Virus record (IMG/VR): IMGVR_UViG_3300036715_000626
Coordinates: 1-64,000 of that record
Reading direction: 5' to 3' (one strand)
Length of the DNA: 64,000 nucleotides
Shown here: piece after piece, positions 62,823-64,000 of the stretch
Layout of the letters: each line of letters starts with the position of its first letter
Position numbering within the stretch: position 1 is the stretch's first letter
Translations under genes and position numbers: made by a program
Notes under the pieces: model-generated
Database searches by the model: none
What the model was told of the DNA's origin: nothing
The model's input: the letters and a program-made list of their open reading frames with translations, nothing else

Positions 62823-62847
62823 ATAATAAAATAAAAAAATATACACA

Positions 62848-62872
62848 TAGCTACTGGTATTACCAGTAGCTA
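62848..62872. terminator. Hairpin
   Basis: TAGCTACTGGTA-T-TACCAGTAGCTA. Confidence 0.7.
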
Positions 62873-62897
62873 CATCTTTTATCAGTACATGGTGTAA

Positions 62898-63353
62898 TTA
62901 TACCTTAGTCACATTAAGCAAAGTGAGTAGTTTAGTAACCATGTCCGGAGCTTGTTTTCTAAGCTGGTTGTTCTTATTAAAAACTCCAGCTACGCCATTC
63001 TTAACAAACTTATGTTTTTTGTCCTTAGGTATTCTATATGGTAAATTATCCACTTGTTGATAGACTCCCCAAACAGGACTATCCGTAACTTCAGAACACT
63101 TTTTAAAAGTACCAGTTTCTAAATTAACTACAATGCAACCTCTTTCACGTACCAACATCAAAGCTTTCTCTCTAGTAAAATTATCATCACCTGTAGTATT
63201 GATAACGTTCACTACGTCATTAACCATAACCTCACTATTACCAACTGAATCGGACCCATTTGTTGCATATAAAACATCTGCTTTACTACCGTATCTTGAG
63301 TGCAGTGTTATCTTTTTATTCTCAGTAAGCCTGTTGACTAATGCTGGTTTCAT
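62898..63353 (-). CDS. Hypothetical protein
   Basis: 151 aa, AAGGAA RBS. Confidence 0.7.
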   Translation of the reverse strand: MKPALVNRLTENKKITLHSRYGSKADVLYATNGSDSVGNSEVMVNDVVNVINTTGDDNFTREKALMLVRERGCIVVNLETGTFKKCSEVTDSPVWGVYQQVDNLPYRIPKDKKHKFVKNGVAGVFNKNNQLRKQAPDMVTKLLTLLNVTKV

Positions 63354-63376
63354 AACTTTCCTTTATTAAAAAATAC

Positions 63377-63412
63377 TGTAACTACTGGCAGGAAATCCTG
63401 CCAGTAGTTACA
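63377..63412. terminator. Hairpin, 17-bp stem
   Basis: TGTAACTACTGGCAGGA-AA-TCCTGCCAGTAGTTACA. Confidence 0.75.
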
Positions 63413-63629
63413 TGTTAACTGTATTTAACAGTTTTGATATTGTATCATCTACTAGATTCTCCGAATCGTCGCTAAGATAATTAGATAAAATACTATTAGC
63501 AGGAGCTAATAAAGTTAAGTTACCTGATACGCTATATGGTTTGGATAAATCTGGGATATTGTAAAACGGTCTAAGTGTTTTAAACTCTTCTGTTAGAAGA
63601 TTATCTAACAAGATAGTGAAGTTTAATTC
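63408..63629 (-). CDS. Probable 3' exon of the nvRNAP beta' N-terminal subunit (phiKZ gp55-56.1-like)
   Basis: Begins ELNFTILLD, as expected right after DFDGD; L.P..N......P..VSGNL.L; no RBS; preceded by intron-like structure. Confidence 0.65.
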   Translation of the reverse strand, partial: ELNFTILLDNLLTEEFKTLRPFYNIPDLSKPYSVSGNLTLLAPANSILSNYLSDDSENLVDDTISKLLNTVNM

Positions 63630-64000
63630 TCTCTTATTCACATAATACGTTACTATTACGTCGCGGCTTTACCCGCTGCTCGATCTTTCGACCGATGACT
63701 GTGTTTTACACAGAAAACCCTCTTAAGGGTGAGTAGACTATATCTTATTTTTGATTGTTTTGTGTTCAAGTCTTCTGATCTTAATATGGGGGTGATCAGA
63801 AAGACTCACTAATTCTTCTAAACTGTGTCTAAGTAAGTACGAGTTTATGTTTGATCTTGGATTACCAGCATCTTTAAATACTCCTAAATACATAGCTAAT
63901 CTGAAGTTACCAAATACATAAAATACTTGTTTACCTTCTTCTCTATTACTATCAATGACTTCATATGTAGCAGCACTAATATCTACATTGTATCTACTGT
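63630..64000 (-). mobile_element. 3' portion of a probable group I intron with embedded ORF
   Basis: S element AAGATATAGTC (63746-63736) followed by five consecutive hairpins, including a GAAA tetraloop. Confidence 0.7.
63656..64000 (-). CDS. 5'-truncated intron-borne ORF (possible homing endonuclease C-terminus)
   Basis: Manual translation SRYNVDISAATYEV...RAAGKAAT*; open from the window edge; no nuclease motif visible in this part. Confidence 0.5.

Follow-up and report, generated by a model that had tools for sequence, protein, structure and literature searches.

A probable mobile group I intron ending in A at the NADFDGD motif of a jumbo-phage RNA polymerase gene

Genome setting

The window analysed here, a stretch of 64,000 nucleotides, is the beginning (positions 1-64000) of a 205,015-bp virus contig with direct terminal repeats and an estimated completeness of 79%; contig and window share one numbering, and the sequence past position 64000 was examined as locus L001 (contig 62001-78000). 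Across the right-hand edge of the window, on the minus strand, lie two parts of a phiKZ-gp55-like gene for the N-terminal beta' subunit of nvRNAP (non-virion multisubunit RNA polymerase), separated by an insertion that carries an ORF for an HNH endonuclease. A homologue of chimallin, the shell protein of the phage nucleus, is encoded at contig 69927-71786, 5 kb upstream of the polymerase gene and its first exon, and on the basis of this gene we assigned the phage to the chimallin-encoding jumbo phages. The public runs that hold the phage are microbial-mat and sediment metagenomes only. Megablast of the locus against GenBank phages returned no match, and the phage has no close cultured relative.

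An interrupted nvRNAP beta' gene

The first exon occupies contig 66732..65485 (minus strand, 416 codons) and ends in NADFDGD. Read onward it forms a 418-aa ORF (66732..65476) that closes with ...SSNADFDGD-KE-stop, and it is the 5' exon ending in DFDGD that a preliminary description, made from the letters of the window, had suggested looking for beyond position 64000. With this 418-aa ORF, tblastn gave full-length matches to 315 phage records, including PhiPA3 gp054, which is annotated as similar to phiKZ gp055, and the 'nvRNAP beta' subunit 1' of Erwinia phage RAY, and Pfam placed Rpb1 domain 2 on it slightly below the cut-off. The NADFDGD motif stands near residue 410 and was invariant in the alignment of homologues. 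Uninterrupted homologues are 475-495 aa long and read DFDGD-A/Q/E-LN, with exactly one residue between D and LN. Relative to them the exon 1 ORF is short of the last ~73 residues, and these are supplied by the 77-aa ORF at 63408..63641 from its fifth codon onward, which bears out the earlier idea that the 77-aa ORF is really a 3' exon.

Exon 2 itself runs from 63629 to 63411 on the minus strand, with its stop codon at 63410..63408, and its 73 codons read ELNFTILLD...NTVNM. The frame beginning ELNFTILLD at 63629 had been described as lacking an RBS, and we found neither an RBS nor a plausible start codon where the exon begins. A tblastn search with exon 2 alone produced one weak match only, a result that we attribute to an exon too short and too divergent for such a search, and the protein sequence of exon 2 is identical to the uninterrupted C-terminus in L005, a sibling contig that is 99% identical to ours. 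Joined together, the two exons would give a product of 489 aa (...NADFDGD|ELNFTILLD...) that is collinear with the homologues of 475-495 aa and, across the junction, has the same sequence as the intronless allele described below. Directly after the exon 2 stop codon, and overlapping it, lies a hairpin resembling an intrinsic terminator (63377..63412, minus strand), with 16 bp followed by a T-run; matches of miRNA models to this hairpin were dismissed as spurious. Two other ways of reading the broken gene, as an intein or as a simple split gene, were ruled out by the ribozyme core and by the lack of translation signals ahead of exon 2. Annotation pipelines call the interrupted beta' gene as two or three unrelated ORFs.

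Insertion boundaries and intronless alleles

The whole insertion extends from contig 65484 to 63630 on the minus strand, a length of 1,855 nt (AAAGAAUAA...AAUAAGAGA), of which the 3' part at 63630..64000 falls in the window. Logan contigs from two microbial-mat runs (X1 and X2) contain a joint that skips exactly these 1,855 bases (63630..65484) with no positional ambiguity, and the JGI contig L005, 99% identical to ours on both sides, reads GATGGAGAT|GAATTAAAC at the site with the same flanks. At the DNA level the intronless allele is GAT|GAA. Intronless alleles with identical flanks fix both boundaries of the insertion to the base, and the insertion point is exactly the border between the codon for the final Asp of the Mg-binding NADFDGD motif and the codon after it. 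Alleles with and without the intron at the NADFDGD site occur together in run X1, and the element is polymorphic for presence and absence at an otherwise identical target site within the same microbial-mat metagenomes.

Structure of the ribozyme core

Read on the minus strand, the insertion contains the P, Q, R and S elements and the P3-P8 pairings of a group I core in the right order. Its P, Q and R elements, which the preliminary description had suggested seeking past the window edge, were found at 65433, 65317 and 65273, and P3 is formed by CCUUCC and GGAAGG at 65440..65435 and 65145..65140. P7 pairs ACGACUA at 65268..65262 (5' strand) with UAGUCU at 63740..63735 (3' strand), the latter being included in the S element AAGAUAUAGUC at 63735..63746. 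Within that element the string AAGATATAGTC, which had been noted as a canonical S/P7 element, was present once in the window (63746..63736, minus strand), with 0.07 occurrences expected by chance. The 5' strand of P8 lies beyond the window at contig 65138..65126, and its perfectly complementary 3' strand, AAAACAAUCAAAA, lies at 63749..63761, inside the 3' end of the endonuclease ORF. At the intron's 5' end, P1 is formed by the exon bases GGAGAU (65490..65485) and the guide GUCUCC (65472..65467), with the 5' splice site after the U of a U.G wobble between exon and internal guide sequence, and the adjoining bases UAAUUU (65478..65473) constitute the guide strand of P10.

Downstream of P7, the five hairpins that had been listed from the sequence were located at 63641..63730 on the minus strand as peripheral hairpins of the P9 region, with the stems ACCC/GGGU, CUGUG/CACAG, UCGGUC/GAUCGA, GCGG/CCGC and CGUAAUA/UAUUAUG. 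When folded, the 106-nt segment 63735..63630 forms exactly these five hairpins at -34.7 kcal/mol (z = -4.37), a value equalled by none of 200 shuffled sequences, and the same P9 hairpin arrangement is present in homologous introns. An extra ~100 nt between P7 and P3' (P7.1/P7.2 type), together with the multiple P9 hairpins, gives an architecture that appears to resemble that of IA2 introns, as judged from the architecture in Rfam alignments.

Searching the window alone with the Rfam model RF00028 at its gathering score (50 bits) gave no match. With permissive filters, the model matched 65494..65177 at 32.2 bits (E = 7e-6), covering P1, P2, P3-P6 and the R element, and 63889..63715 at 17.8 bits, covering the S element and P9. 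We attribute these split, sub-gathering matches to the 1.3-kb ORF in the P8 loop, which the two halves flank. An ORF-less homologue of 484 nt at the same codon boundary in a different phage (L092) scored 56.6 bits, above the gathering score; this intron is 78% identical to ours over the 5' core and has a short P8 hairpin at the corresponding place. In an alignment of six family members, compensatory changes were present in 24 of the 45 consensus pairs, and the guide co-varied with the codon usage of the exon in relatives (GGAGAU/GUCUCC, GGGGAU/GUCCCC and GGCGAU/GUCGCC). Elsewhere in the genome no further intron of the NADFDGD-intron family was found, and a second occurrence of AAGATATAGTCT at contig 136429 was set aside as a chance match within coding sequence.

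The endonuclease ORF

The ORF in the insertion encodes 445 aa (contig 65075..63738, minus strand; 63738..64000 in the window), with a GTG start preceded by AAGGA. Being bracketed by P3, P7 and the perfect 13-bp P8, it sits in the P8 loop. Pfam assigned NUMOD4 (1.3e-6) and HNH_3 (3.4e-6), both above their cut-offs; the protein aligned with I-HmuI (PDB 1U3E; E = 7.4e-12), including the catalytic H..N..N positions, and it matched PHROG HNH families, phrog_59 at 6.7e-39. Of the two endonuclease types that had been suggested for such an intron, HNH and GIY-YIG, it is the former. An ORF running in from the window edge through the core had also been described, and the 445-aa frame is indeed open from beyond position 64000; its stop, placed earlier at 63656, is instead the TAG at 63740..63738, within the S element. 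The frame that does end at 63656 is a separate and unrelated one of 37 aa that begins at 63769, with stops further upstream.

Based on these data, we consider it very probable that the window ends in a mobile group I intron inserted at the NADFDGD motif of a gene that, in a chimallin-encoding jumbo phage, encodes the N-terminal beta' subunit of nvRNAP, and we infer that this intron is spliced. The preliminary description had proposed that a group I intron splits beta' at DFDGD, and the proposal held on the three points where it might have fallen, with a 5' exon upstream, a covariance model that matches both halves of the core, and a beta' ORF upstream that is incomplete. The precursor mRNA would fold into the ribozyme, and exogenous guanosine would attack behind the last base of GAU, a U that a U.G pair with the guide keeps in P1. 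The released 5' exon would then attack the 3' splice site, which would be positioned by P9.0 (CUC/GAG) together with a P10 of unusual strength (6 bp, contiguous with P1), and GAU would be joined to GAA to give the 489-aa protein. The endonuclease from the P8 loop presumably nicks or cuts co-occurring intronless alleles, leading to homing.

Homologous introns in beta' genes of related phages

A search with the exon 1 protein returned 309 relatives, roughly 190 of them truncated beta' ORFs, and among the 120 of these that were listed (P0001-P0120) three length classes could be distinguished: intact proteins of ~487-498 aa, proteins of ~414-435 aa ending within or after NADFDGD, and proteins of ~372-386 aa ending in QRN. 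In the sampled DNA (the surveyed intron loci being L009, L089-L092, L192-L195, L255-L259 and L305), homologous introns occupied at least six positions, namely QRN|PS, RNP|T, NG|DFDGD, the inside of the F codon, DFDG|D and DFDGD|, and at the protein level additional truncated ORFs among the 120 listed end at NA| and NAD|. Some genes, such as those of L009 and L256, contain two introns each. The endonucleases of the homologous introns are of the HNH or DUF723 type or are missing altogether, and where present their ORFs lie in the P1/P2 region, in P8 or in P9. Among environmental phages with a chimallin gene, beta'-N is a hotspot for introns.

The 99%-identical sibling L005 is without our intron and has another homologous intron at QRN|PS (L005:4572-6374), the endonuclease of which (420 aa, NUMOD4/HNH_3/NUMOD1) is 31% identical to ours. 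In our phage the QRN|PS site, at contig 65605-65610, is empty; at these two sites, which lie 120 nt from each other, each phage has an intron where the other has none. The six exon bases beside QRN|PS are recoded, reading CCAAGT in ours versus CCTTCG in L005. This distribution of occupied and empty sites is the pattern that would be expected of active homing. Phages that are 99% identical and hold different introns at reciprocally empty sites also offer a natural setting in which to study competition between introns.

Other approaches to finding family members yielded little. Searching for related loci with a single protein found nothing; an alignment-based scan, which is biased to genes with an intact motif, added one intron only (L009), and exact-pattern scans for further members of the A-ending clades gave nothing or chance matches, except for L325, which is the L092 phage assembled a second time, with 1,100 nt of identical sequence. 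As a separate observation, a 16-nt core motif, TCAACGACTATCGAAA, was present in more than 92 IMG/VR contigs, many of them longer than 200 kb and several with two or three copies per locus; as far as motif occurrence goes, this distribution indicates a family that is common among large phages and extends beyond RNAP genes.

The terminal A and the 3' splice site

Mutational data from model introns indicate that a terminal G is required for exon ligation. For this step, group I introns normally need their last nucleotide, a G, in the guanosine site of P7 (PMC3984707). In the present intron the base in the place of this omega-G is an A (63630), at a boundary set by the intronless alleles. The preliminary description had remarked that an exon starting with GAA-TTA-AAC would leave the intron ending in A, and the intronless allele confirms this as the DNA boundary. 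Of 15 homologous introns whose junctions are well defined, 11 have a terminal G and four a terminal A, the latter being ours, those of L092 and L005, and intron 1 of L256. The depth of the contig at base 63630 was ~0.3, and a sequencing error is an unlikely source of the A, which was seen in four introns of separate assemblies. An altered guanosine-binding pair in P7 was likewise rejected as the cause, since P7 does not differ between the introns ending in A and those ending in G; in our intron the pair (cGACUA/UAGUC) looks canonical.

Loss of the terminal G could also mark an intron that is decaying or defective in splicing, with a gene that is broken in this phage or two ORFs that are made as separate polypeptides. 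The non-G terminus and the sub-threshold covariance score at the level of the window are compatible with such decay, but the core helices, the guide and the endonuclease ORF are all intact, the product of the gene is one of the core subunits of nvRNAP, an RBS or plausible start from which exon 2 could be made separately is missing, and the contig, estimated to be only 79% complete, does carry direct terminal repeats. Moreover, introns in host genes of just 49-59% identity have the terminal A in common, which is not expected of a lethal defect. We regard decay as very improbable. Given a core subunit gene, an intact core and guide, and an A-ending terminus conserved across diverged hosts, it is very likely that the intron splices, whichever junction is used.

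Several structural features favour the junction at which the intron ends in A. Uninterrupted pairing of the guide UAAUUU|GUCUCC with GGAGAU|GAAUUA would give a 6-bp P1 and a 6-bp P10 contiguous with it. Just before the terminal A, in the intron tail UGAAUAAGAGA (63630..63640, minus strand), GAG at 63633..63631 can form a P9.0-like pairing with CUC at 63733..63731, and the 10-nt tail has the same length as those of the G-ending relatives L009i2 and L090. The bases flanking the two junctions differ, and shifting the pair of junctions consequently never yields the intronless sequence. Contiguous P10 pairings in the four A-ending introns measured 6, 5, 4 and 5 bp, compared with 0-2 bp in the eight G-ending introns that could be scored, and the long P10 may be a compensation for the lost terminal G. 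The A-ending introns represent only about two independent clades, which makes this association suggestive, not proven.

The preliminary description had offered two ways out of the oddity, a non-canonical last nucleotide or a split codon at AAGAGAG|AATTAAAC. The former fits the data better. With a 5' exon ending in GAU, the split codon leads to an in-frame stop, and the frame is kept only if the 5' cut passes the U.G pair by one base. Both splice sites would then lie one base further 3' (GAUA|AAG...GAGAG|AAUUA), giving an intron with a terminal G and a protein reading DFDGD-K-LNF. The guide pairs continuously with this shifted junction too, the same shift in L092 gives the expected protein exactly, and K occupies the junction position in at least one distant homologue (L082); the junction of L092 is in fact ambiguous, its GAA repeat also permitting GAUG|...AAG|. 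Such a shift would, however, place the 5' cut after an A-U pair and not after a U.G wobble, the defining mark of 5' splice sites in group I introns; the protein would have K where that of the intronless allele has E, and the introns at the QRN|PS site of L005 and L256 (site A) would end in C when shifted in this way. We consider the shift improbable.

A slightly better case, which we still judge unlikely, can be made for a canonical intron with its 3' splice site at the first G upstream that keeps the frame (AAUAAG|AGAGAA, after 63633), with a product that reads NADFDGD-R-ELNF and has one extra residue. This is the only combination of a U at -1 with a terminal G that stays in frame, and a similar solution by insertion of one residue is available for the L005 intron. 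Against it, DFDGD and LN are separated by exactly one residue in the 99%-identical intronless allele and in all the homologues examined, and such splicing would displace P10 by 3 nt and leave most of P9.0 (GAG) within the exon. Upstream-G splicing is impossible in L092, with an in-frame UAA just upstream, and in intron 1 of L256, where no G is available. The latter intron, in a host gene 59% identical to ours, has the tail GAAUAAUACCA without any G past the first base, and its junction, CA|CCUUC, is conserved with that of L005.

With these alternatives weighed, we see about an even chance that the A-ending introns splice at their DNA boundaries, with the pairings positioning the 3' site. A more specific proposal, which we hold as a tentative one a little short of even, is that our intron and at least one related clade (the QRN|PS introns of L005 and L256) are natural, functional A-ending group I introns, in which the choice of the 3' site would have moved from recognition in the guanosine site to the long P10 and P9.0, with the P7 pocket kept canonical for the first step. 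Should A-ending introns splice accurately, the terminal-G rule for exon ligation would not be absolute in nature, with consequences for the mechanism of the ribozyme and for group I systems engineered to circularise RNA or to splice it in trans.

Comparison with known introns

The genes phiKZ gp71-73 and the RNAP genes of AR9 are interrupted by self-splicing introns with HNH ORFs, at sites that differ from ours, and mobile group I introns with HNH endonucleases in jumbo-phage RNAP genes are an already known kind. The present case adds a new site, at the catalytic Mg-binding loop of beta', a motif crowded with homologous introns at different positions, and an unusual 3' end, the A. The closest described case is that of PhiPA3 gp210, a chimallivirus group I intron with an I-HmuI-related HNH endonuclease in an RNAP beta-subunit gene (Birkholz et al. 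2024, PMC11620839; review PMC12908238). In the PhiPA3/phiKZ precedent, which the pattern of alleles at our site matches, the intron-encoded HNH enzyme mediates competition (PMC11620839, PMC12908238), and it was shown to serve one phage as a weapon against another in co-infection (PMC11620839). Intron mobility has been proposed as the origin of split RNAP genes (PMC7598289). Both the gp210 intron and ours are inserted right after conserved active-site aspartates of a multisubunit RNAP gene, and in both cases intron-plus and intron-minus relatives co-occur. They differ in that the host gene of the former is beta (RpoB-like), whereas ours encodes the N-terminal beta' subunit and is interrupted at NADFDGD, and in that the present intron ends in A and is known from sequence alone.

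The introns of the Bacillus phages SPO1 and SP82 (I-HmuI/I-HmuII) share with ours the NUMOD4-HNH N-terminal region of the endonuclease and an insertion at a catalytic motif of an essential polymerase. Their host gene is a DNA polymerase gene, and at 445 aa our endonuclease, with its long extra C-terminal region, is larger than I-HmuI (174 aa). The SPO1 intron also has its ORF placed in the P8 loop. The IA2 introns of T4 (td, nrdB and sunY) have P, Q, R and S elements, including AAGAUAUAGUC, and the extra P7-P3' pairing of the P7.1/P7.2 type, and P9.0 and P10 help to define their 3' splice sites, but they end in G and carry their GIY-YIG or HNH ORFs in other loops.

Other features near the polymerase gene

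A gene for an HD-domain protein (contig 67778-68476) also lies just upstream of the polymerase gene, and the gene order chimallin then beta' recurs in relatives. Two tRNA genes are found nearby on the minus strand, outside the window, one at contig 69227-69314 (L001:7227-7314) with a long extra arm of ~14 nt and the other at contig 73108-73180 (L001:11108-11180) with mismatches in the acceptor stem. Downstream of exon 2, a stretch of 517 bp (62849-63365) that is missing in L005 holds an ORF of 151 aa (62898..63353, minus strand) with no match in Pfam or PHROG. On either side of the stretch stands a terminator-like hairpin (63412..63377 and 62875..62845); the two resemble each other and share TA(A/G)CTACTGG. 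The stretch may be a small gene cassette that is mobile or exchanged by recombination.
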